Source: Phyllobates terribilis
Lineage: Eukaryota
Length of the DNA: 64,000 nt
Assembly: GCF_046119375.1 (NCBI RefSeq)
Contig: NW_027362771.1
Coordinates: forward strand, 580,878,001-580,942,000
Reading direction: 5' to 3'
Shown: piece by piece, positions 2,970 through 44,115 of the stretch
Layout of the letters: every line of letters begins with the position of its first letter
How positions within the stretch are numbered: the first letter of the stretch is position 1
Made by a program: the position numbers and the translations under genes
The notes under the pieces: model-generated
The model's database searches: none
What the model was told of the DNA's origin: nothing
What the model saw: the letters and a program-made list of their open reading frames with translations, nothing else

Positions 2970-5281
2970 CAAAAATGGCCACCTCTGGTGAAGATTACTG
3001 TTATTATGAACAGCTAAGCAAGTTGAAGATGAAATAATCTCTAAAGTCAAAGATGACACTTCCTTTGTATTTTCTGCCAAAATATATAGTCATTTTTTTT
3101 ACATTTTACAATTCTAAAAAGGAAAATGGGCTGAAGAAAAAGTTTGGCCACCCTTGGAGATTTGTGTACTCAGATCACTTTGACCAAGGTTTCAGGCCTT
3201 AATTAACCTGTTTAGGATTATGGCTTGTTCACGATCATCGTTAGGAAAGGCCAGGTGATGCAAGTTTTCCAACTTTAGGCTGCGTGCACACGATACGTTT
3301 TTCATGCGTTTATGCTGTGGAATTTCCGCAGCGGAAATGCATCAAAAACGCTTGGTAATCCGCACCCCATGGTCCCCAATGGCATTCCGCAATGTCAGTG
3401 AACATGCTGCGGATTTTTCCACAGCGTTTCTGCAGCGCTCATAAATCCGCAGCATGTTCATTAATTTTGCGGAAGCGCCGCCATTGACTTGCATTGAGAT
3501 GCATATAATCCGTGTCAGTACAAGCGGATTATATGCGGTTCAATGTGCGGATGGTACCCGGTTGTGGAGGAGAGAAGACTCTCATCCAGACCTGGGTACC
3601 ATTGTACCTGTGAAAAAAAAAAGAATAAAATAATAAAGTTTATATTCACCTTTCCGGCGGCCCCTGCAGCGCTTCTCGTTCCAGGACCTGAGATCACGTC
3701 GCGGTCATGTGACCGCAGGCTGTCTCGCGAGATGCCGGCAACCAGGAAGAAGCCAGGAAGGAGCGCGACAGCACAAGCCGGGGCATCGGAGGTAAGTATG
3801 GCTTTTATTTTTACGGTTATACTGTATAAATCCATGCTGGTTGCATGGATTTATACAGTGTGACCTAGTTGTCAAGCACTTTCCAAGTGATGCTATCGCC
3901 TGGAAAGTGCTTGTCAGTCCGCATGCGAATCTGCATGTATTCTGCAGGGAAAACGCATGCACAATCTGCATGCGTTTTTTCTGCCAGGGAGATGCAGACA
4001 TGCTGCAGAAATTTTCTGCATCATGGGCACATAGCCTTATACAAACCCAGCCTCCTCTAACCGTGTGCCAAAAAACAGCAGCCATGGGTTCTAAGCAGCT
4101 GCCGAGGACTCTGAAAATAAAAATGGTGGAGGCCCGCAAAGCCAGAGAAGTCTATAAGAAGATAGTAAAGCGTTTTTCAAGTTGCCCTTTTCTCAGTTTG
4201 AAATGTAACTAAGAAATGGCAGTTATCTGGATCAGTGGAGGTCAAGATAAGGTCTGGAAGAGCACGCAAAATTTCAGTGAAAGTTGCTCGTAGGATTGCT
4301 AGAGGGGCAAATCAGAACCACCCCCTGCTTGAATGCTAAAGACCTTCAGAAAGATTTAGCAGACTCTGGAGTTGTGGTATATTCTACTGTTCAGCCACCT
4401 GCACTAATAGGGCCTCCATGGAAGAGTCAGCAGAAGAAAACCTCTCCTGCGTTCTCTCCATAAAATTCAGCGTCGCATGTATGCAAAAGAACATCTAAAC
4501 AAGCCTGAAGCATTTTGGAAACAAGTCCTGTGGACCTATAAGGATAAAATAGAACTCTGTGGCCACAATGATCAAAGGTATGTGTGGAGAAAAAAGGGCA
4601 CAGAATTTCAGGAAAAGAACATCCCGCCAGCCATTAAGCATGGTGGTGGATCAATCATGCTTTGGGGTTGTGTTGCAGCCAATGGCTCGGGGAACATTTC
4701 ACGGGTAGAGGGAAGAATGGATTCAATGAAATTTCAACAAATTCTTGATGCAAATGGGTAATGATTCTAAACACACGTTAATGTCGTCTACTGGGGATAT
4801 CAAAATATGCAAGCTGAAGGTTTTACAATGGCCCTCACCGTCCCCTGATCTGAACATCATTGAAAATCTGTGGCTAGACCTTAAAATAGCAGTGCATGCA
4901 AGACGCCCCAGGAATCTCACAGAACTGGAAGAATTCTCCAAGGAAGAATGGATGAAAACCCCTCCAACAAGAATTGAAAGACTCTTGTCTGGCTACATAA
5001 GCGTTCACAAGCTGTGATACTTGCAAAAGGGGGCGCTACTAGGTACTAACCATGCAGGGTGCACAAACTTTTGCATCGGCCCATTTTCCTTTTTGTAATT
5101 TTTAAAATGTAAAAGATTAAAGGGTTTTTTTTGTTTTGTTTTGTTTTTGCTGAAATACAAAGGAAATGTGTCATCAATAACATTAGGCCTTTTAGAGATT
5201 AATTCATCTTCAACTTGCTTAATTGTTCACAAAAACAGAAATTTTGACCAGGGGTGCCTAAACTTTTACATGTCCCTGTAT
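2970..5281 (+). mobile_element. Degraded DD34E Tc1 transposon in CARM1 intron
   Basis: Long TIRs (agcaagttgaagatgaaataatctctaa ~3016 / ttagagattaattcatcttcaacttgct ~5192). Transposase remnants from ATG 4084 to ~5049 (KHGGGSIMLWGC, WPSPSPDLNIIENLW) with frameshifts; the right end finishes at ...cctgTA. Confidence 0.9.
3278..4036. mobile_element. PIF/Harbinger-type MITE nested in the Tc1
   Basis: TTA on both sides (3275-3277, 4037-4039); ends ggctgcgtgcacacga / tcatgggcacatagcc are inverted; the Tc1 sequence rejoins across it. Confidence 0.8.
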
Positions 5282-8510: not shown

Positions 8511-11500
8511 TTTTTTTTTGAAGTGTGTGTATATTTAATTTTTTTATATATGTGTATATATATATATATATATGTGTGTGTTTTAATCTTCTTGTATATA
8601 GAGTAGCGGGAAGAGTTTGGATGGGCCTGTTCATTCGATAGAGGTTTCCCTTTTCTTATTAGAATGTGCACATTATAAATTCAGACTGACGGCAGCAAAA
8701 CCACATAGGCAAACGGGTAGATATAGAGTAAAGAAACAAACCAGAATCTGTGTATACAGTACCGGGCAAGAGTTTGGATACACCTGTTCATCCCCTAGGT
8801 TTCATTTTTCTTATTGGAATGTGCACATTATAAATTCAGACTGACAGCAGCAAAGCTGCAAAGGAAAATGTGGAGATTATAAAGAAACAAACCAGAATCT
8901 GTTTTACACTTTTGATTTCTTCTTGTTCTGTCCCTTGTCATCACCTGGCATGGCTTCCAATGCACGAGTCTGTCTTAGCCACACTTCACCGGCTTTCATA
9001 AATTGTGACCATCAGGTGTGATTTGCAGAGGCTGTGTTTGTACACAGCTCCAACGAGTGCTGAGTCCTATTCCACCAATGTTTTCAGCCAGAATATGGCA
9101 AAAACCACTCAACTAAGTAAGGAGAAATGATGGCCTGTCATTACTGAAAGAGACACAGGTCGGAACCTTGAAGGTATTCCTCAAGTGCAGTCATCAAAAC
9201 CATCAATCTCTATTGACTCATGAAGACCAACTCAGGAAAGAAAGATCAAAAATTATCTGCGCTGCAGCGGATAAGTTCATCAATTACCAGCCTCAATTGC
9301 CTGTCATGCTAGGTAGGGGAAGAACCCAGCATACAACGATGGGAAAAGGGGAGAAGCCCAGCAACTAGGGGGGGAGTGGAGACTCCTAAGCAGATCTAAC
9401 AACACCCTGACTTCCCAATTGTTCTGCACCCATCGCGGAGTAGGATACCTTAGCCCTGTCGGACCCTAGAGTTAGGCCCTAGGTAGGGAGGGGTGAGCAC
9501 TATTTAGCCCCACTGCAACTAAAGACATACAAGGGGATACACGTAGCTTAGAGAAGACACCAGAGAGATAACGACTGCAATCCACAAAGGAACTCCAAGG
9601 AGAATCTAGCTGCCTGCTAGACTGCCAGACCTGTACAGAGGAATGAACTATCATCTGCCACTCTCCAGAGAAACAGTGTATTTAAAGATCCAGCAAGGGT
9701 GTGTGAATTAGCAGCAGAAGGTGGAGATCACCGCTGGGTCCTAGAGTAGGAGGGATGATGAAAGGATTAAGAAGGTGTCTGCAAGGCCAAGTGCAGCGAC
9801 TTTCTACAGCCAGATCCAAAATGTCTGTCAAACCTGACATGGCCGTGACTGTAGCTTCCCCCCCCCCCCCCCCCCCCCCCACCCTTCTATGAGTGGCCTC
9901 AGGACCAGGTTTCTCCGGATGAGAGGCATGGAAAGAACAAACCAACCTTGGGGCATTCACCTCTGATGCTGAACCCCACATCCTTTCCTCTGGACCATAA
10001 CCCGCAAGTGCACCAAGTACTGATGAAGGGAACGACGTTGTGAGAATCCACAATCTTCGAAATTTGAAACTCCAAATTGCCATTAACCATGATTGGGGGT
10101 GGCGGCAAGGGGAGGACTCAAGAGGTACCACATGCTAATTGAGCAGAGACCTGTGACACACGTGGATCCTAAGAGCCTGAGGTGACTCCAGATGAAACGC
10201 TGCTGCCTTAATGATGGCGGTTATTTTATAGGTACCAATAGATCTAGGTCCCAGCTTCCAGGAAGGAACCTTCACCTTGATATTCCTGGTAGCCAACCAC
10301 ACAAAGTCATTGACACTTAGGTTCGTACTTGGTGAGGGTTTCCTGCCAGCCATACTTTTGTGTCTGTCTCCCATGATCTTCAAATTACTCTGCACCCCCT
10401 GCCACACAGAAGAGAGCGACGTGACGAAACAAAATGTTCCTCCTCAGGAACTCCTGAAGCCCCTCCCCCACTAAAGGTACCAAACTGGAGGAAAACTATG
10501 CACCAAAGAAAGGTGACCTGCCAGTAGATTCTTGACGATGATTATTAATAGCAAACTTGGCCAATGGTAAGTAGGATACCCAATCCTCCTGGTTCTCGGA
10601 GACAAAACACCTGAGGTAAGTCTCCAAATTCTGATTAATGCACTTGGTCTGTCCATTCGACTGAGGATGGAAGGCAGAAGAAAAAGACAACTGCACCCCC
10701 ATTTGAGCACAGAAAGCTTTCCAGAATTTAGAAACAAACTGGGTCACCTGACCTGACACCACATCAGAAGGAACCCTGTGAAGCTTCACGATCTCATTAA
10801 TGAATACCTGAGCAAGTGTCTTGGCATTCGGAAGTGCTGGTAATGTGAAGAAATGAACCATTTTACTGAACCTATCTGCAACCACCAGAACTACAGTCTT
10901 GCCTGCAGATATCGGTAGGTCAGTAATGAAATCCATAAACAAGTGTGTCTATGGCCTGCTAGGAATAGTCAGCGGCAGAAGAGGACCAGATGGACGGGCA
11001 TGCGATACTTTAGAACGCGCGCAAATACTGCAAGCACACATGTTCAACCACATCCTGATGCAATCCGGCCACCAAAAACGACGAGAAAGGAGGTCCGCAG
11101 TTGCCTTACCACCTGGATAACCAGCAAGCACAGAGCTGTGATGTTCCCTAATTACACTACAGATTAGATGGTACAAATAACCTTCCTGAAGGACAGGAGG
11201 CAGGGGCATCCCCCTGAGGCTCCAACACCTCTACCCCCCAGGTCAAGGGTACAAAGCCGAAATGACTACCCCCTTCTGCAAAGTAGGGGTAGGATTGTCA
11301 TGGTCACCACCACCAGGGAAACTCTGGGATAAAGCATCAGCATTGATGTTTTTAACCCCTGGGCGGTAAGTGACAATAAAATTGAACCTAGTAAAAAAAA
11401 ATGGAACATCTAGCTTGGCTAGGGTTGAGACGTTTAGCTGGTTGAAGATATGACAGGTTCTTATGGTCTGTGATAACATTAATAGGATGGACAGCCCCCT

Positions 11501-11831
11501 CCAACCAATGTCGCCATTCTTCGAATGCCAATTTAATTGCCAAAAGCTTCCTATTACCCACGTCATAATTTCTCTCAGCCGAAGACAATTTTTTGGAAAA
11601 GAAAGTGCATGGACATCATTTACCAGGGGACGGACCCTGAGACAACACAGCCCCAATCCCCACTTCTGACGCATCAACTTCTACGATGAAATATTGAGAA
11701 ACATCGGGTTGACGTATAGGTGCCGTGGCAAAACAGCTCTTTAGGGAGGAAAACAGATTCGACCATTTAGAAAGATCAGATCCCTTGTCATCAGTGAGGG
11801 GTTTCACAATTACCGAATAATTTTTAATTTA

Positions 11832-15335: not shown

Positions 15336-15945
15336 ACAGTTGTGCTCAAAAGTTTACATACCCCGGCAGAAGTTTTCCTTTCTTGGCCTTGTTTCAGAGA
15401 ATATTAATGATAACAGAAAAACTTTTTCTCCTCTCATGGTTATTGGTTGGGTGAAGCCATTTATTGTCAAACTACTGTGTTTTCTCTTTTTAAATCTTAA
15501 TAACAACCAAAATCATCCAAATGACCCAGATCAAAAGTTCTCATACCCCAGTTCTTAATACCGTGTATTGCTCCCTCTAACATCAATGACAGCTTGAAGT
15601 ATTTTGTGGTAGTTGTGGATGAGATTCTTTATTTTCTCAGATGGTAAAGCTGCCCATTCTTCTTGGCAAAAAGCCTCCAGTTCCTGTAAATTTCTGGGCT
15701 GTCTAGCATGAACTGCGCACTTGAGATCTCCCCAGAGTGGCTCAATGATATTGAGGTCAGGAGACTGAGATGGCCGCTCCAGAACCTTCACTTTGTTCTG
15801 CTGTAGCCAATGACAGGTCGACATGGCCTTGTGTTTGGATCGTTGTCATGCTGGAATGTCCAAGTACGTCCCATGCGCAGCTTCCGGGCTGATGAGTGCA
15901 AATTTGCCTCCAGTATGTGCTGATAACGTGTTGCATTCATCTTTA
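15336..15945 (-). mobile_element. Tc1 3' fragment (transposase C-terminus plus TIR)
   Basis: ORF 15555-15824: KVLERPSQSPDLNIIEPLWGDLK...RGSNTRY*; TA-cagttgtgctcaaaagtttacatacccc end. Confidence 0.85.
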
Positions 15946-30260: not shown

Positions 30261-30689
30261 CTGCACAGAGAGGGACATGAGCATCTTCTGTCTATTCGCT
30301 CTATTATTCTCTGTTATCAGCCATCTGAGCCTGGGGGGAAAGTCCGGATGGCATTCTAGACTGATCGGGTAAGAACCTAGATGACTGAATCCAGCAACTC
30401 CGTCTATGAGACCTGGCACTGCTCATATAACACCAACACTGTCCAACCGCCTAAACGCTGCAGTCAATCACTAACAGCAGCAGGTAAGCAGTATGATCCT
30501 GACAGGTCATCCATCAATGAAACTGTGGTGTGCTGATGGGATGCCACGTCCCCTGGGGGCTTAGTCAAAGCCCCCTCTGTTATCATCTTGGTCTTCAAGT
30601 GTAAGACCACCATAGGCTGGACCTTATAGGAGGCTGTGAATATTATTACTATGATAAACTGCAATAATGAACTGTGACATCGCAGATCA

Positions 30690-31960
30690 GAAGAGGAGCC
30701 GGGGTGAGGAGCGAAGAGGGGGCGAGGACGCCGCCAGACAAGAGGAGCCGGGGGAGGTGGGAAGAGGGGGCGAGGACGCCGCCAGACAAGAGGAGCCGGG
30801 GGAGGTGGGAAGAGGGGGCGAGGACGCCGCCAGACAAGAGGAGCCGGGGGAGCAGGGAAGAGGGGGCGAGGACGCCGCCAGACAAGAGGAGCCGGGGGAG
30901 CAGGGAAGAGGGGGCGAGGACGCCGCCAGACAAGAGGAGCCGGGGGAGCAGGGAAGAGGGGGCGAGGACGCCGCCAGACAAGAGGAGGCGGGGGAGCAGG
31001 GAAGAGGGGGCGAGGACGCCGCCAGACAAGAGGAGGCGGGGGAGCAGGGAAGAGGGGGCGAGGACGCCGCCAGACAAGAGGAGGCGGGGGAGCAGGGAAG
31101 AGGGGGCGAGGACGCCGCCAGACAAGAGGAGCGAAGAGGGGGCGGGGACGCCGCCAGACAAGAGGAGCGAAGAGGGGGCGGGGACGCCGCCAGACAAGAG
31201 GAGCGAAGAGGGGGCGGGGACGCCGCCTGACAAGAGGAGCGAAGAGGGGGCGGGGACGACGCCAGACAAGAGGAGCCGGGGGAGGAGGGAAGAGGGGGCG
31301 CGGACGCCGCCAGACAAGAGGAGCCGGGGGAGGAGGGAAGAGGGGGCACGGACGCCGCCAGACAAGAGGAGCGAAGAGGGGGCGGGGACGACGCCAGACA
31401 AGAGGAGCCGGGGGAGGAGGGAAGAGGGGGCGCGGATGCCACCAGACAAGAGGAGCCGGGGGAGGAGGGAAGAGGGGGCGGGGACACCGCCAGACAAGAG
31501 GAGCGAAGAGGGGGCGGGGACGCCGCCAGACAAGAGGAGCGAAGAGGGGGCGGGGACGCCGCCAGACAAGAGGAGCCGGGGGAGGAGGGAAGAGGGGGCG
31601 CGGACGCCGCCAGACAAGAGGAGCCGGGGGAGGAGGGAAGAGGACGCCGCCAGACAAGAGGAGCGAAGAGGGGGCGGGGACGCCGCCAGACAAGAGGAGC
31701 CGGGGGAGGAGGGAAGAGGGGGCGGGGACGCCGCCAGACAAGAGGAGCGAAGAGGGGGCGGGGACGCCGCCAGACAAGAGGAGCGAAGAGGGGGCGGGGA
31801 CGCCGCCAGACAAGAGGAGCGAAGAGGGGGCGGGGACGCCACCAGACAAGAGGAGCCGGGGGAGGAGGGAAGAGGGGGCGCGGACGCCGCCAGACAAGAG
31901 GAGCCGGGGGAGGAGGGAAGAGGACGCCGCCAGACAAGAGGAGCGAAGAGGGGGCGGGGA
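30690..31960 (+). repeat. GC/purine-rich minisatellite with 36-bp and 48-bp variant units, in YIPF2 intron
   Basis: Core gagggggcggggacgccgccagacaagaggagc plus or minus a 12-bp module; it explains the 400-500 aa ORFs in several frames. Confidence 0.96.
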
Positions 31961-32313
31961 TGACACCGCAGCCGGTGGCCACTGATTCCTAAGATGGTGG
32001 CAGGACCGAGCTCCTGGGAGCAGATGCTTTCATCTCTGTAGACTCTGGAAACCTAAAATTATTTATCCCATAAAGGTAAACGCCTTAGAGAGAGAAAAAT
32101 GTTACGGGGCTGGAAAACCGGCGAGGATGAAGAAAAACACATCGGAAAGTTGTAAGACACTAAATTAAAAAATAAATTAGAGACAGTGTAATGGCACCAG
32201 TCACATCTACAACTAGGGCAGCAAACAAAATACACAGTCCTGCTAATATAGAAGGAGGGAAAAATATATATATACGTATATAACAGCCAACGACATAGCA
32301 GTCCAGTACTTAC

Positions 32314-32989: not shown

Positions 32990-34085
32990 CTGTAATACTG
33001 CCCCTATGTACAAGAAAATAACTACTATAATACTGCCCCTATGTACAAGAAAATAACTACTATAATACTGCTCCTATGTACAAGAATATAACTACTATAA
33101 TACTGCCCCCTATGTACAAGAATATAACTACTATAATACTGCTCCCTATGTACAAGAATATAACTACTATAATACTGCCCCTATGTACAAGAATATAACT
33201 ACTATAATACTGCCCCTATGTACAAGAATATAACTACTATAATACTGCTCCTATGTACAAGAATATAACTACTATAATACTGCTCCCTATGTACACGAAT
33301 ATAACTACTATAATACTGCCCCCTATGTACAAGAATATAACTACTATAATACTGCTCCCTATGTACACGAATATAACTACTATAATACTGCCCCCTATGT
33401 ACACGAATATAACTACTATAATACTGCCCCCTATGTACAAGAATATAACTACTATAATACTGCCCCTATGTACAAGAATATAACTACTATAATACTGCCC
33501 CTATGTACAAGAATATAACTACTATAATACTGCCCCTATGTACAAGAAAATAACTACTATAATACTGCCCCCTATGTACAAGAATATAACTACTATAATA
33601 CTGCCTCCTATGTACAAGAATATAACTACTATAATACTGCCCCCTATGTACAAGAATATAACTACTATAATACTGCCCCCTATGTACAAGAATATAACTA
33701 CTATAATACTGCTCCCTATGTACAAGAATATAACTACTATAATACTGCTCCCTATGTACAAGAATATAACTACTATAATACTGCTCCCTATGTACAAGAA
33801 TATAACTACTATAATACTGCTCCCTATGTACAAGAATATAACTACTATAATACTGCTCCCTATGTACAAGAATATAACTACTATAATACTGCCCTCTATG
33901 TACAAGAATATAACTACTATAATACTGCTCCCTATGTACAAGAATATAACTACTATAATACTGCTCCCTATGTACAAGAATATAACTACTGTAATACTGC
34001 CCCTATGTACAAGAATATGACTACTGTAATACTGCCCCCCTATGTGCAAGAATATAACTACTACTGTAATACTGCCCCCCTATGT
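32990..34085 (+). repeat. AT-rich 35-36-bp minisatellite (tatgtacaagaatataactactataatactgccccc), about 30 copies, filling the TIMM29 intron
   Basis: Direct repeats visible. Confidence 0.97.
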
Positions 34086-34117
34086 ACACAACTACTTATT
34101 TTCTTCCTTTTTCTCAG

Positions 34118-34710
34118 TTATCTGGACGAGGAGCCTCTTGCGTGATTATAAGGAAGCCTGTAAGGATATTGTAGTGGGGGCCAGAGAGCGCCCCCTGAAA
34201 GCCTCGGTGTATCTGTCCCTGCTGGCAGGGGTGGGGGTCTGCTCGTCTAAAGCCCCCTCTGAGGACTCTTTTCAGTGTTCTCTCCTGGAAGCGTCGGCCT
34301 CTCTTCTTCTCCTTTCCCCTTGGACGAGGAGCGGGACGTCTGATGGCCACGTGCAGCGTCTCCTGGACCTGAGCCACCAGGGCCGCCTGCGCCACGTGAA
34401 GCTTCTGTGTCTGTCCCTGATGTACGAGGCTCCATATTCCCCGGACTGTGATCTGTACAACACCCAGTGCCCGCACCTGCAGCCCCGCCTGGCCGACTTC
34501 CCTGCCCGGGTGCTGGACGTCGGCTTCTTTGGACACTGGTGGCTTCTGAGGAATAAGATGAAGGACTTTGATATCAATGAGGACGAGTTCCGTCACCTTC
34601 CCTCCAGCATGAGAGCCATCTCCTACAGTGATCTGCACTCCGAGGAAAACGAGAAACTCTATCACATCAAATTCCAGCCGGTCATTATGCGTGAAGAAGA
34701 CCCCCAGTGA
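34118..34710 (+). CDS. TIMM29: TIMM29 exon 2
   Basis: ttctcag|TT; WTRSLLRDYKEAC...GRLRHVKL...LQPRLADFPARVLDVGFFGHWW...DINEDEF...LHSEENEKLY matches human TIMM29 (C19orf52). Confidence 0.95.
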
Positions 34711-36210: not shown

Positions 36211-38447
36211 GCGTACGGGGGTCTCACAGCTCTCTGAGAGAAAGATGGTGCAGATGGATTTCAACATGTCTGATCGTTCTGTTCAAAGGGAAAAATAGGA
36301 TTGTGGCAGCCGTTTTCTTATCACACCCAATCTGAGAGTTCATGATAATAGGGGTGGGATGCGGGGGGTCAAGAAAATGCCTGTTGGCTGAAGTTTTAGC
36401 TGATGGGTAGGAATGTGCCCCTGCCAATAATTAATGTCCACCCTTACATGTCCACCTCTCATCTGCGTTGTTTCCCATCTTTCCTCGCATCCTGAGTGGT
36501 TCATATATTCGCTGCATTTTTGAGGAGTTGTCCCCGGTTTGGCTTCAGACGTCTCTGTAGATTTTTGTGTGCACCAGTGAGCTCAGGATGAGCAAGTCCT
36601 GGTTAGTTTGTTGAGGGCTTAGTACACTATAGGCAGTCTATGGGGAGGAGGATTACTTTAGGTAAGCAGAAGGTAAAGCTTCGCCCCCTCCCTGCGGCGT
36701 GGTATAAGGAGGTTGTGCATGCAGTATAGCAGTACAGCACTTCCAGGCGGGATTACTCCAGCACAGCGGATTACTCTCTGGCACAGTAGATCCCGCCGTG
36801 TGAATAGCTTGTTGTTCAGCCGTATCTCTCCTCTGATCTGTAGGTGATTATCCAGGTCATGTCTGGACAGGACTGTTTGCTCAGCGCAGTTTATCATGTG
36901 CTGAGCTATCTGTGTAACCAGGTACTTACTGCTGTGTATCAGGAGGAAGGGCCCAAACCAGACCCTAAAAGAGAGAGGGGAAAACTGCCTGTACCAATTC
37001 AGAATAGGGGGTAAAGTTTTAGTCCAATCAGCAGGGGCTTATATTTTAGGTGCACATACCCGAACATCTGTGGGGACTTTTGAGCATTTCTGAGGTCAGA
37101 CCCTGATGTTGGGTAGAGGCCAGGCTCACAGTCTCCATTCTAGGTGTTGGTTGAGCCTGAGGTCATGTGCGGCCAGTCATGTTTTTCCATCAAATTTCCC
37201 AACCACGTCTGTATGACCCTTGTGCACTGGGCACAGTCTTGGGGAACAGAAAAGGGTCTTCCCCCAAACTGTTCCCACAAAGCAGGAAGCTAAAATTATC
37301 CACAATGTCTTGTGCTGAAGAACAAAGGGCCCAATGCCGACTCCTGATAACAAGCCAATAGGGTTATCCTCCTCCACCATCTCTACAGAGGCACAATGCA
37401 GTCAGGGGGTAACGTTCTCCTGGAATCACCAAACCCAGACTCCTCCAGACGCCAGATAGAGAAGTGCGATCAGTCACTGCACAGTACATGTCTCCTCCAA
37501 CGTCCAGTGGTGGCAGCTTTACACCTCTCCATCCAACGCTCGGCATTGTGCTTGGTGATGTATGGCTGCATGCAGCTGCTCGGCCATGAAGCTCCAGGTG
37601 GGGGCGCAGTGTTTGTGCTGATGTTATGCTAGAGGAGGTCTGGACTCTGTAGTTATGGAGTCAGCAGAGCGTCAGTGACTTTTCTGCTGTCTGCTCCTCA
37701 GCACTCGGCCCCCCACTTTGCATCGTTATGCGGTCTCCAATTTGTAGCTGAGTTGCGCTTCCTTCCACTTCTCAATAATATCACTCACAGGTGATGTGGG
37801 AAGATTTAGAAGGGAAGAAATGTAATGAACGGACTTGTTACCCCAGTGGCTCCGATTACAGGATCACGTTGGTATCAGTGAGCTCTGCCCCACCACACGG
37901 CAGATGGCAGGGCGAGGATGCAAATGTTATATACTAGAGGAGCAAGGGGCCGGATGTTATACATCGGGGAAGGGGGTGCAGAGGTTATACACACTGGGGT
38001 GTGAGGGGCCGGATGTTATACACTGGGGGCAAGGGACTGTAGGTTATACACTGGGGGCGAGGGTCCGGAGGTTATACACTGGGGGGTGGGCAATTGACCG
38101 GAGGTTATACACTGGGGGGGGCGAGGGGCCGGATGTTATACACAGGGGGAGAAGGTTATACACTGGGGGGGGGCGAGGGGTCAGATGTTATACACTGGGG
38201 GGGGGCGAGGGACCGGAGGTTATACACTGGGGGGGGCGAGGGACCGGAGGTTATACACTGGGGGGCGAGGGGCCGGAGGTTATACACTGGGGGGGGTGAG
38301 GGGCCAGATGTTATACACTGGGGGGGGGCGAGGGGCCAGATGTTATACACTGGTGGGTGAGGGGCCGGATGTTATACACTTGGGGGTGGGGGGGGGGCAA
38401 GGGGCCGGAGGTTATACAGTGGAGGGGGCGAGGGGCCGGATGTTATA

Positions 38448-40017
38448 CAGTCATGGCCAAAAGTTTTGAGAATGACACCAAAATTATATTTTCACATGAT
38501 CTGCTGGCCTCTGGTTTTTATTAGTGTTTGTCTGATGTTTATATCACATACAGAAATATAATTGCAATCATATTATGAGTACCAATAGGTTATATTGACA
38601 GTTAAAATGAGTTAATGCAGCAAGTCAATATTTGCAGTGTTGCCCCTTCTTCTTCAAGACCTCTGTAATTCTCCCTGGCATGCTCTCAATCAACTTTTGG
38701 ACCAAATCCTGACTGATAGCAGTCCATTCTTGCATAATCAATGCTTGCATTTTGCCAGAATTTGTTGGTTTTTGTTTGTCCACCCGTCTCTTGATGATTG
38801 ACCACAAGTTCTCAATGGGATTAAGATCTGGGGAGTTTCCAGGCCATGGACCCAAAATCTCTATGTTTTGTTCCATGAGCCATTTTGTTATCACCTTTGC
38901 TTTATGGCAAGGTGCTCCATCATGCTGGAAAAGGCATTTTTGGGCGCCAAACTGCTCTTGGACAGTTGGGAGAAGTTGCTCTTGGAGGACATTCTGGTAC
39001 CATTCTTTATTCATGGCTGTGTTTTTAGGCAAGACTGTGAGTGAGCCGATTCCCTTGGCTGAGAAGCAACCCCACACATGAATGGTTTCAGGATGCTTTA
39101 CAGTTGGCATGAGACAAGACTGGTGGTAGCGCTCACCTCTTCTTCTCCGAATAAGCTGTTTTCCAGATGTCCCAAACAATCGAAAAGGGGATTCATCAGA
39201 GAAAATGACTTTGCCCCAGTCCTCAGCAGTCCACTCCCTGTACCTTTTGCAGAATATCAGTCGGTCCCTGATGTTTTTTCTGGAGAGAAGTGGCTTCTTT
39301 GCTGCCCTCCTTGAAACCAGCCCTTGCTCAAAGAGTCTCCTCCTCACAGTGCGTGCAGAAGCACTCACACCAGCCTGCTGCCATTCCTGAGCAAGCTCGG
39401 CACTGCTGGTAGTCCGATCCCGCAGCTGAAACAGTTTTAAGATACGGTCCTGGCGCTTGCTGGTCTTTCTTGGGCGCCCTGGAGCCTTTTTGACAACAAT
39501 GGAAGCTCTCTCCTTGAAGTTCTTGATGATGCGATAGATTGTTGACTGAGGTGCAATCTTTGTAGCTGCGATACTCTTCCCTGTTAGGCCATTTTTGTGC
39601 AGTGCAATGATGGCTGCACGTGTTTCTTTAGAGATAACCATGGTTAACTGAAGAGAAACAATGATACCAAGAACCAGCCTCCTTTTAAAGTGTCCAGTGA
39701 TGTCATTCTTACTTAATCATGACTGATTGATCGCCAGCCCTGTCCTCATCAACACCCACACCTGTGTTAATGGATCAATCACTAAAACGATGTTAGCTGC
39801 TCCTTTTAAGGCAGGACTGCAATGATGTTGAAATGTGTTTTGGGGGTTAAAGTTCATTTTCTGGGCAAATATTGACTTTGCAAGTACAGTAATTGCTGTT
39901 AAGCTGATCACTCTTTGACATTCAGGAGTATATGCAAATTGCCATTACAAAAAATGAAGCAGTAAACTTTGGAAAAACTACTATTTGTCTCATTCTCAAT
40001 ACTTTTGGCCATGACTG
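38448..40017 (-). mobile_element. Apparently intact Tc1/mariner DD35E (Traveler-type) transposon
   Basis: 1570 bp; TA on both sides; 28-bp TIRs cagtcatggccaaaagt(t/a)ttgagaatga with one mismatch; single uninterrupted transposase ORF. Confidence 0.95.
38625..39641 (-). CDS. DD35E transposase, 338 aa, full length
   Basis: N-terminal HTH region, GRPR motif, and catalytic FSDES / QHDGAPCH / PIENLW with 35 residues between the second D and E (counted from codons). Confidence 0.95.
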   Translation of the reverse strand: MVISKETRAAIIALHKNGLTGKSIAATKIAPQSTIYRIIKNFKERASIVVKKAPGRPRKTSKRQDRILKLFQLRDRTTSSAELAQEWQQAGVSASARTVRRRLFEQGLVSRRAAKKPLLSRKNIRDRLIFCKRYREWTAEDWGKVIFSDESPFRLFGTSGKQLIRRRRGERYHQSCLMPTVKHPETIHVWGCFSAKGIGSLTVLPKNTAMNKEWYQNVLQEQLLPTVQEQFGAQKCLFQHDGAPCHKAKVITKWLMEQNIEILGPWPGNSPDLNPIENLWSIIKRRVDKQKPTNSGKMQALIMQEWTAISQDLVQKLIESMPGRITEVLKKKGQHCKY

Positions 40018-40834
40018 TACACTGGGGGGGGGGGGGTGAGGGGCCGGAGGTTATACACTGGGGGGTGAGGGGCCGGAGGTTATACACTGGGGGGGGCGAG
40101 GGGCTGGATGTTATACACTGGGGGGGTGAGGGGCCGGATGTTATACACTGGGGGGGGTGAGGGGCTGGATGTTATACACTGGGGGGGTGAGGGGCTGGAT
40201 GTTATACACTGGGGGGTGAGGGGCCGGATGTTATACACTGGGGGGGGGTGAGGGGCCGGATGTTATACACTGGGGGGGGTGAGGGGCCGGATGTTATACA
40301 CTGGGGGGGGGGGGGGGGGGGCGAGGGGCCGGATGTTATACACTGGGGGGTGAGGGGCTTGATGTTATACACTGGGGGGTGAGATGCTGGATGTACAGAC
40401 ACAACTCTAGGAGCGTCGGACATGTTGGTTGCCTCCAGCTTCCCAGAAGCAGATGGAAGTTATAACCTTGTGGCCAGAATGGCTTCTGTCTCTGGGGGGC
40501 AGCACTTTGTGACACTCACATATTACACTACTTTTCCTGGCAGATGGGTTCTGTCTTTTCCCATGTTTTCGTGCCTCCTTTCTCGTGCCCTGGTTACCCT
40601 TTGTGGTCCCAGGCTTCACCCTTTGTGGTCCGGGCTTTCCCCTGTGAATGGAGCGCGCCCTCACCGGAGCCGCTCGACTCTATTTATTGACATAAAGGCT
40701 TAGTTGTCAGAGCGCAGGTGACACATGACAGATTCTCCTCGTCCAGGTACACACAGCGCAGTATTTACCAGGAGCCGTGTCTCCAACACAACGCCGCTGT
40801 GCCGCTGCTGGAGAGGGGAGCACCACCGGCCACC

Positions 40835-41394: not shown

Positions 41395-44115
41395 TTAAGT
41401 CAATTAATTTTCCTGAGGGGCCACACTAATAGGCTGAAATAAATTCTGCTCAGTATTAATATTAACATATTAAGTATCACTATTTTATATAATATTAATT
41501 GTATCACTTAATATTGATCAGAATTAAGTATGCTGACATCCCCCTATATACCATATGCCCCGCACACAGCCCACTATATACAGTATGAGCCCCCACACAA
41601 CCCCCTTATATACAGCATGATCCCACACAGACCTCCGATATACAGTATGAGCCCCCACACAGACCTCCGATATACAGTATGAGCCCCCACACACAGCTCC
41701 CCTATATACAGCATGAAACCCCACACAGCCCTCTATTTACATTATGAATCCCCACACAGCCCCCTATATACCATATGAACCTGCACACAGCCCCCCTATA
41801 TACCGTATGAGCCAAAACACAGCCCCCTACATACAGTATGAATCCCCACACAGCCCCCTATATACAGTCCTGCTCATCGTTATTGGCACCCATGAAGTTT
41901 AAGTGCATAATAAAGTTAAACAGTTTTTTGGATAGAGACTTGTGTTAAATACAAAAGAGCAAATGATAAACAATAATTTAAAACAAAAAAACAATTGGAG
42001 GGACAAATAGAGAAACCTAAAGCTTACTAGGATACTGGTATTGGCCCCCTTTACATTCATTTAGTATGGAAACACATTTTGACTCGCCTGTAGTAAATCA
42101 CAAAAGAGATTCACCTGTGATTAATTGTCGGTATCAATGTGACATGAATTAGCCAATGAATGATAACTTCAGTGTTTTAATAAGCCACATGGTAGGCCAT
42201 GTTCCTTTGTCACAATGGTGAAGACAAAGGAGCTCTCTGAAGACATCAGAACTGCTATTATTAGCAAACACAAGACTTCCAAAGGGTACAAGGCCATCTC
42301 CAAAGACCTTGGTATCCAAGTTTCAACAGTGCTCAATGTTATTAAGAAGTTTGCCAAGCATGGAACCATCAAGAACCTCCCTGTACATGGGGGGAAGAGG
42401 AAAATTGACAAGAGATGTCTTTGAAGGTTGGTGCGAATGGTGGAAAAAAACACAACGTTATACCTGGAACAGTTTGGGGTCATGGTTTCAACAAGTACGA
42501 TACGCCACACACTAAACCAAGCAGAAGCTTTATGAGCAAATGCCAAGGAAGAAACCATTGCTGAAGAAAAGACATAAAAAGGAACGACTGATCTTTGCCA
42601 AAGAGTAACTTGACAAACCACAATCCTTCTGGGAAAATGTTCTGTGGACAGATGAAACAAAAATAGAGCTTTTTGGCAATGCAAAGTTTGCTTACAGACA
42701 GCACAATGAAGCTTATAAGGAAAAGAACACCTTACCAACAGTTAAGCATGTTAGAAGATCCATAATGCTGTGGGGTTGCTTTGCTGTGTCTGGTAGTGGA
42801 GGCCTTGACCTTATCACAGAAATCATGAAATCAGAGAATTAGCAAGAGATTTTAGATAAAAATGTCCTACCCAGTGTAAGGTTTAAGTTGAAGATCATGG
42901 TTGAAAAAGAAAAAATGGACTGTTTTAAAATGGCCAGCAATAAGTCCTGACCTCAATCCCATTGAAAATCTTTGGGGTGAGCTGAAATCTGCCATTGGGA
43001 AAAAGAACCCTGCAAACATTCAAGAGCTTGAACAAACTGCAAAGGAAGAGTGGGGGGAAATTCCAGCTGAGAAGAGCAAGAAGCTTATAGATGGCTACAA
43101 AAAATGTCTGGAGGCTGTCAGCAATGCCAAAGGGTGTGCAAACAAGTATTCATTAGGGGGGCAACCAAGTATTCATTAGGGGGCCTTTATTGCTGCACAT
43201 GCTGTTTATTCTGTTTCTTCTTTGTTTTTCAACTTCCAGGTTGCAATTTCAATGTTTTATTGTGGTATTACTTTGGGCCACTAATTAAAAAATCCTGAGG
43301 ATATAACTTTGGTACATTTCCATTTATTTCTGAAAATATTGTACATTCTATGAAAAAATGAAGGGGTGCCAATAATGGAGAACAGCATGAGCCTACACAG
43401 CCCTACTATATACAGTATGAGCCCCAACACATAGCTCCCCTATATACAATGAAACCCCCCTATATACAGCATGAGTTCCCACATTGCCCCCTATATACAG
43501 AATGATCTCCCATATAGACTCCTACATACAGTATGAGCTCCCACATAGCCTCCTATATACAGTATGAGCTCCCACATAGCCCCCCTATATACAGTATGAG
43601 CTCCCACATAGCCCCCTATATACAGTATGAGCTCCCACATTGCCCCTATATACAGTATGAGCTCCCACATAGCCCCTATATATAGTATGAGCTCCTACAT
43701 AGCCCCCTATATACAGTATGAGCCCCCACATAGCCCCACTATAGAGTATGAGCTCCTACATAGCGCCCTATATACAGTATGAGCCCCCACATAGCCCCAC
43801 TAAGCCCCCTATACACAGTATCTGGCCACACATATTAGAAAAAAAACATATACCTCTCTCCTGTTCCCCGGGCGCTCTGCTCCTGTCTTTTCTGTGCGCA
43901 CTGACGCTCCGCACGGCAGATGAGAGACGAGATGCAGTGACGTCATGGCATCTGCTGTTGCACACACTGAATAGTGGAAGAAGGATTTAGCGGCTCCCTC
44001 ATCCTCCATTATATTCACTACTAACTAACTGCATCTAGAGGATGGAGACAGCAGTGAAATCGGGACGTCGGGGTGGGGAAAGCGGCTGCAAGGTGCGGCC
44101 CGTGGGCCAGAATAA
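41395..44115. mobile_element. hAT-like MITE remnant carrying a ~31-bp minisatellite (cccccacacagccccctatatacagtatgag; 41540-41864 and 43385-43820)
   Basis: Ends ...ttttcctgagggggccacac and gcggcccgtgggccagaa resemble hAT subtermini; the repeat units are directly visible. Confidence 0.55.
41865..43382 (+). mobile_element. Degraded Tc1 transposon inserted into the minisatellite
   Basis: TA-cagtcctgctcatcgttattggcaccc / ggggtgccaataa ends; transposase from ATG 42215 (MVKTKELSEDIR) to ~43150 (WPAISPDLNPIENLW), with stops and deletions. Confidence 0.88.

Follow-up and report, generated by a model that had tools for sequence, protein, structure and literature searches.

A structurally complete and apparently young Traveler (DD35E/TR) transposon in the poison frog Phyllobates terribilis

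Introduction

A Tc1-like element with an open transposase gene lies in a 64,000-nucleotide stretch of the Phyllobates terribilis genome (hereafter the window, meaning the whole stretch that was analysed). A preliminary description of this DNA had assigned the element to the Traveler (DD35E/TR) family of Tc1/mariner transposons and had suggested that it is a recent invader that might still move. The locus therefore raises the question of what the element is, how young this copy is, and whether it could still transpose.

Traveler elements were described by Zong et al. 2020 (PMC7093834) as being about 1.5 kb long, with one ORF of about 340 amino acids and a duplication of the TA target. Their ends are inverted, are 13-68 bp long and start with CAGTC or CAGCC, and the protein carries a pair of helix-turn-helix motifs, the motif GRPR, a nuclear signal and 35 residues separating the second D from the E (PMC7093834). 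The hosts listed were 85 ray-finned fishes, four frogs and two squamates; the frog elements ranged from 1563 to 1565 bp and encoded proteins of 338-350 amino acids, and the describers concluded that the family moves horizontally (PMC7093834). In the poison frog Oophaga pumilio, fish-like Tc1 elements have been reported to be abundant and expressed and to stem from horizontal transfer, one of the elements reported being Tc1-3_SSa (Rogers et al. 2018, PMC6278860), and about 7% of P. terribilis reads derive from Tc1 elements (PMC12208295).

Our analysis indicates that the element is very likely a structurally complete, young Traveler copy, belonging to a poison-frog subgroup whose nearest elements are TR-Rhma, from the cane toad Rhinella marina, and those of Neotropical fishes.

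Results

Structure and target site of the element

The element spans 1570 bp (38448-40017), and reading of the sequence placed its gene on the minus strand. It is located within a 31-bp host satellite array that Tandem Repeats Finder delimited at 37926 to 40394. The left part of the array (37926-38447; unit about GGGGCCGGATGTTATACACTGGGGGGGGCGA) ends in the target TA, and the right part of the same array runs from 40018 to 40394. A word count showed that all 25 GTTATACAC words of the window fall within this array, 14 to the left of the element and 11 to its right.

One TA copy is found on each flank, at 38446-38447 on the left and at 40018-40019 on the right. When the 1570 bp and one TA were removed, the flanks joined into AGGGGCCGGATGTTATACACTGGGG..., which is a regular 31-bp satellite unit. 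The restored junction reads ...GGGGCCGGATGTTATACACTGGGG..., again an ordinary unit of the array, and the predicted empty satellite site is …GATGTTATACACTGG…. The array thus supplies the empty-site control for the insertion, and on this basis the TA duplication is genuine; the earlier claim of a 1570-bp element with an exact TA duplication inside a satellite repeat unit holds.

The arms of the inverted ends pair over 48 nt at 85%. Within the terminal 28 nt (38448-38475 at the 3′ end of the transposase gene and 39990-40017 at its 5′ end, both given for the minus strand) there is a single mismatch, at position 18, in agreement with the 28-bp, one-mismatch repeats read previously. Both ends begin with CAGTC. 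At position 18 the 5′ end has an A (window base 40000), and the 3′ end of the element has a T, as has L001, a Traveler contig that is described below. The 3′ inverted end is the same as the ends of L001 and L002 and the published starts of TR-Rhma and TR-Auli.

Between the ends, on the minus strand, lie a 5′ untranslated part (39642-39989), the transposase ORF with its stop codon (38625-39641), and a 3′ untranslated part (38476-38624) that on sequence reading contains an AATAAA at 38517-38522 (minus strand), a candidate polyadenylation signal. The 5′ untranslated part is 94% identical to that of L001, relative to which it carries a 5-bp insertion and a 2-bp deletion. The whole window is free of N.

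The transposase and its predicted fold

The ORF is open throughout and encodes 338 amino acids. The catalytic residues D149 (codon 39195-39197), D241 (38919-38921) and E277 (38811-38813) give a D-91-D-35-E arrangement, and the GRPR motif occupies residues 54-57 (39471-39482; all codons on the minus strand). Pfam searches identified HTH_Tnp_Tc3_2 (1.6e-18) and DDE_3 (7.6e-14), together with weaker N-terminal helix-turn-helix matches to HTH_23 and, weakly, to HTH_SB. The uninterrupted frame, the helix-turn-helix region, the GRPR motif and the D-35-E triad noted in the preliminary description are thus all present. Basic stretches at residues 51-66 and 110-127, read by eye, are a candidate nuclear signal.

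An AlphaFold model built from a 26-sequence alignment had a mean pLDDT of 85.5, and it places six helices within residues 5-105. The top match among solved structures was 5CR4, the catalytic domain of Sleeping Beauty (TM by target of 0.82, 38% identity), followed by full-length Mos1. The match to 5CR4 was also evident at the sequence level (E = 7.7e-46).

Family membership

The length (1570 bp), the 338-amino acid protein, the 28-bp CAGTC ends, the TA duplication and the DD35E spacing all correspond to the structure described for Traveler. As a stand-in for the TR-Rhma consensus we used contig L001 (Logan SRR32659532; 1571 bp), which contains two 39-mers of the published consensus in exact form; direct comparison with TR-Rhma was made by eye and with these two 39-base patterns. 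L001 is itself a whole Traveler element with a TA on each side. The window element is 95.2% identical to L001 across all 1570 bases, and the two transposases are about 95% identical.

At the protein level the closest relatives are other poison-frog copies. A second intact P. terribilis copy, P0133 (XP_073514773.1; 338 amino acids, open), matches the window protein at 330 of 338 residues, and Ranitomeya imitator gene models containing the ORF are 98% identical to it (284/291 residues for P0013, by word search). An exact look-up of the window protein in the assembly collection returned no record. Identity is 94-95% to the Prochilodus magdalenae proteins, 93% to that of Serrasalmus rhombeus (a partial match), 91% to that of Xiphophorus maculatus and 83% to a Salmo salar "transposase-like" protein (P0011). 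The spacing of 35 is found in every intact match down to 47% identity, and the 43% match P0120 has 34. Alignment with P0120 and with Sleeping Beauty alike puts the additional residue immediately ahead of the PWP motif.

In a maximum-likelihood tree, the window copy, P. terribilis P0133 and R. imitator P0013 formed a clade with 100% support. A starred clade that adjoins the salmonid group encloses it together with Prochilodus, Serrasalmus, Xiphophorus and contig sequences; the starred clades that hold the window copy include salmonid, carp, Xiphophorus and Prochilodus copies. A phylogeny placing the element outside the DD35E clade had been named earlier as refuting evidence; this tree, with one DD34E protein (P0120) as its only outgroup, groups the window copy with salmonid Traveler-like proteins. 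Together with the structural agreement and the 95.2% identity to L001, its position in a starred clade with these proteins bears out the assignment to DD35E Traveler.

Public protein sets label several of these transposase ORFs as host proteins (P0133, P0013, P0098, P0100 and P0135). P. terribilis P0133, a plain 338-amino acid transposase, is misnamed "mitochondrial glutamate carrier 1 isoform X1". The R. imitator entries are chimeric models of 357-804 amino acids, of which one goes under the name "Solute carrier family 44 member 1" and another includes a PF03006 domain.

State and age of the copy

Where at least 90% of the 55 intact relatives agree on a residue, the window protein departs from it at just three positions, A46, I67 and I164. 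P0133 shares A46 and I67, and an R. imitator copy shares all three. Because they are common to other poison-frog copies, these residues are best read as subgroup markers and not as private decay. The window protein has no private change at any conserved column.

We then compared the window protein with five poison-frog copies (P0133 of P. terribilis, and P0013, P0098, P0100 and P0135 of R. imitator, which are partial). It has one private residue, Q235K (codon 38937-38939, minus strand), six residues before D241. At residue 235 the window copy alone has K; all three copies that cover the position have Q, as do the five relatives, toad-type or from fishes, that were compared. A K also stands at this column in the hyperactive Sleeping Beauty SB100X. 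The five other copies carry 26 private changes in 1298 residues, or about 2% each, from which 6.8 changes would be expected in 338 residues where one was observed (Poisson P(≤1) = 0.009). Their differences are confined to single copies or are recurrent R-to-C changes, with the sole exception of A326 in P0135. Both P. terribilis copies have T at position 326, and P0135 is the only R. imitator copy that covers it, so that this position may separate the two species. In the tree the window copy has a terminal branch of 0.0027, and the other two frog copies have branches of 0.017 each.

Between the window copy and L001, dN/dS was 0.26, with 16 replacement and 17 silent changes (P = 0.0002 under neutrality). 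The value was 0.17 against L003 and ranged from 0.17 to 0.30 against the relatives overall. The lineages therefore diverged mostly under selection on the transposase, while the lineage was transposing. CpG decay was uninformative as a proxy for age, the four elements having about the same CpG count and CpG-type changes accounting for 2 of 46 on the window lineage.

These results, which estimate age from amino-acid changes, indicate that the copy is young or close to its source lineage, because its protein is near the consensus and has a single private residue where the others have about 2%. They also suggest that the transposase is probably functional.

Divergence of the transposase and of a host gene

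The main coding exon of Tim29 (TIMM29) is located in the window at 34099-34707 (plus strand), and the Traveler copy follows some 3.7 kb downstream. The encoded sequence is 100% identical to Tim29 of P. terribilis, which confirms this species as the host. We used this exon as a measure of host divergence. Relative to P. terribilis (100%), its identity is 88% in R. imitator, 85% in Anomaloglossus, 66-78% in other frogs and about 50-55% in ray-finned fishes. The fish and frog lineages split more than 400 Myr ago. The transposases of the frog and of a characiform fish (Prochilodus) are 94-95% identical, while Tim29 is about 52% identical between frog and fishes. Given this low host-gene identity, the likeness of the fish and frog transposases reflects horizontal transfer; the comparison with host-gene divergence suggested earlier is in line with this reading for the fishes.

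Between P. terribilis and R. imitator, the consensus transposases differ at no more than 1-2 residues and Tim29 differs by 12%, with four R. imitator copies, all partial, and a single host gene entering the comparison. These figures hint at a common source for the copies of the two poison-frog genera that is more recent than the genera.

The proposal that the element is a recent invader stands in part. The copy appears young, with its one private residue, and the family has been horizontally transferred. This reading concerns the copy and the family and not the date of entry into poison frogs; the same subgroup is present in R. imitator, and the other copies carry about 2% private amino-acid changes.

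Surroundings in the window

Three other Tc1-like remnants, at 42233-43149 (plus), 15558-15940 (minus) and 4829-4987 (plus), are 25-36% identical to the Traveler protein. The one at 42.2-43.2 kb was translated and is broken by several stops and frameshifts, consistent with the earlier remark that the other Tc1 pieces are decayed. ORFs at 10496-10942 and 11243-11677 (both minus) resemble the part of an LTR retrotransposon that encodes integrase and RNase H (e.g. ...HPQSNGQTKCINQNLETYLRCF...).

The window contains further tandem repeats. A G+C-rich (65%) array at 30464-31982 has long open frames in several frames and on both strands, with proline-/arginine-rich repeats; its appearance is that of a minisatellite and not of a gene. 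A tandem repeat at 33522-34049, directly upstream of the Tim29 exon, is open on both strands, with repeated ...IIVVIFLYIGSS... and ...MYKNITTIILPP.... A second 31-bp satellite, unrelated to the first (41536-41868; unit about ACAGCCCCCTATATACAGTATGAACCCCCAC), begins 1.1 kb past the transposon-bearing array.

Discussion

The element is an ordinary member of an already described family; what is new is the family of hosts and not the kind of element. Two other origins were weighed and rejected. The first is that the element descends from a DD34E/Tc1 lineage that gained a residue independently. The 35 spacing does come down to a single residue before PWP when Sleeping Beauty and P0120 are taken for comparison, and such a gain could in principle recur. 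However, the added residue sits at one and the same position in every match of 47% identity or more, the element agrees with Traveler in ends, length and motifs, the full-length nucleotide identity to a TR-Rhma-matching contig is 95%, and the tree places the copy inside a clade with salmonid copies. On the identity to L001, the tree position and the shared residue, we consider an independent DD34E origin highly improbable. The other is that a transposase gene has been adopted by the host. It could be argued from the open ORF and from the habit of gene-prediction pipelines of naming such ORFs as host proteins, but those names belong to chimeric or wrong models. Both ends and the target duplication are intact, and the element sits inside a satellite and is multi-copy, with paralogues that are decaying. 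Domestication, for these reasons, can be given almost no credence. A third concern bears on the age of the copy: its near-consensus appearance could be an artefact of assembly or polishing, in which reads of other copies overwrote private variants in a highly repetitive genome on the 10-Gb scale. Tc1 elements make up the share of P. terribilis reads given above, and the copy is unusually clean compared with the five others. Against this, the satellite junctions are exact and restore the unit, the window has no N, and the copy retains at least two differences that the others lack, Q235K and the end mismatch. We regard such an artefact as improbable, and the reading of the copy as a young Traveler element is retained.

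How would this copy move? By analogy with what is established for Tc1, Tc3, Sleeping Beauty and Mos1, we infer a cut-and-paste mechanism. The transposase would have a paired-like double helix-turn-helix part for DNA binding, a GRPR hook, a basic stretch for nuclear import, and an RNase H-like domain in which D149, D241 and E277 carry out catalysis. It would bind the 28-bp inverted ends and cut the element out, and the excised element would be reinserted at a TA, which becomes duplicated. Judged from its sequence, the copy would be autonomous and its protein active, and it is plausible that it is still mobile. The suggestion that it is possibly still mobile fits the single private residue, the absence of private change at conserved columns and the dN/dS of 0.17-0.30.

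The opposing view is that the copy is structurally intact but immobile, its integrity being a sign of youth and not of function, either because the end mutation or Q235K is crippling or because small RNAs or methylation silence it; indeed, the host may silence the Traveler family. Tc1 transposase contacts roughly bases 5-26 of the transposon end. This region covers position 18, so that the A of the 5′ end is probably inside the transposase-binding site, and the change could weaken binding. Q235K is close to the second catalytic aspartate, decay is under way in the other poison-frog copies, whose private amino-acid changes (about 2%) include CpG-type R-to-C, and a transposition assay was found for no Traveler element in the literature searched. 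On the other side, the hyperactive SB100X has the same K, the protein otherwise equals the subgroup consensus, and published intact elements also have one mismatch in their ends (TR-Auli, 28/28, 96.43%; TR-Rhma, 39/39, 97.44%). Immobility is a serious possibility, somewhat short of an even chance.

A broader reading joins native activity with spread: the copy would be a natively active, autonomous Traveler element, of a subgroup that moved among Neotropical hosts later than the split of the two frog genera. Those hosts may comprise characiform and poeciliid fishes, the cane toad and the two poison-frog genera. We put this forward tentatively, as rather unlikely in its entirety on the present sequences. 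Were it true, a Traveler element would for the first time be ready to have its activity tested directly, and transfer from frog to frog or from fish to frog would have a dated example.

With the present copy, the host range of Traveler gains the poison frogs, Phyllobates and Ranitomeya, in which its nearest relatives are the elements of the cane toad and of Neotropical fishes. No new mechanism and no new kind of element are revealed. An activity assay could sensibly begin with this copy, though the practical value is modest, and the wrong host-carrier names of Traveler ORFs in public frog protein sets are flagged here.

Comparison with known systems

The closest known system is TR-Rhma of R. 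marina, a 1563-bp element with a 338-amino acid protein and CAGTC ends that is present in 8027 copies, more than 300 of them intact (PMC7093834 supplement). The P. terribilis element shares with it the protein length, the CAGTC ends, the TA duplication and DD35E, and differs in total length (1570 bp). Its proxy L001 has 95.2% DNA identity and 95% protein identity to the window element and lacks the 5-bp insertion and 2-bp deletion of the 5′ untranslated part. By eye, the published alignment of the TR-Rhma DDE domain shows 4 differences from the window protein in about 115 residues, and the start of the representative TR-Rhma copy is about 93% identical to the first 146 bases of the window element. 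The poison-frog copies nevertheless form their own starred subgroup, with markers A46, I67 and L70, and the four frog species of the TR-Rhma paper include no Dendrobatidae (PMC7093834).

The Traveler copies of fishes (Prochilodus magdalenae, Serrasalmus rhombeus, Xiphophorus maculatus and the salmonid TR-Sasa) belong to the same family, and the intact ones are DD35E. More distant is Sleeping Beauty (SB100X), a reconstructed DD34E/Tc1 element that has the same fold, catalytic triad and domain order. Its catalytic domain (5CR4) is 38% identical to that of the window protein, and its second D and its E are one residue closer together. Each end of Sleeping Beauty is long, spanning about 230 bp and containing two binding sites, whereas the inverted ends of the P. 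terribilis element are short (28 bp).
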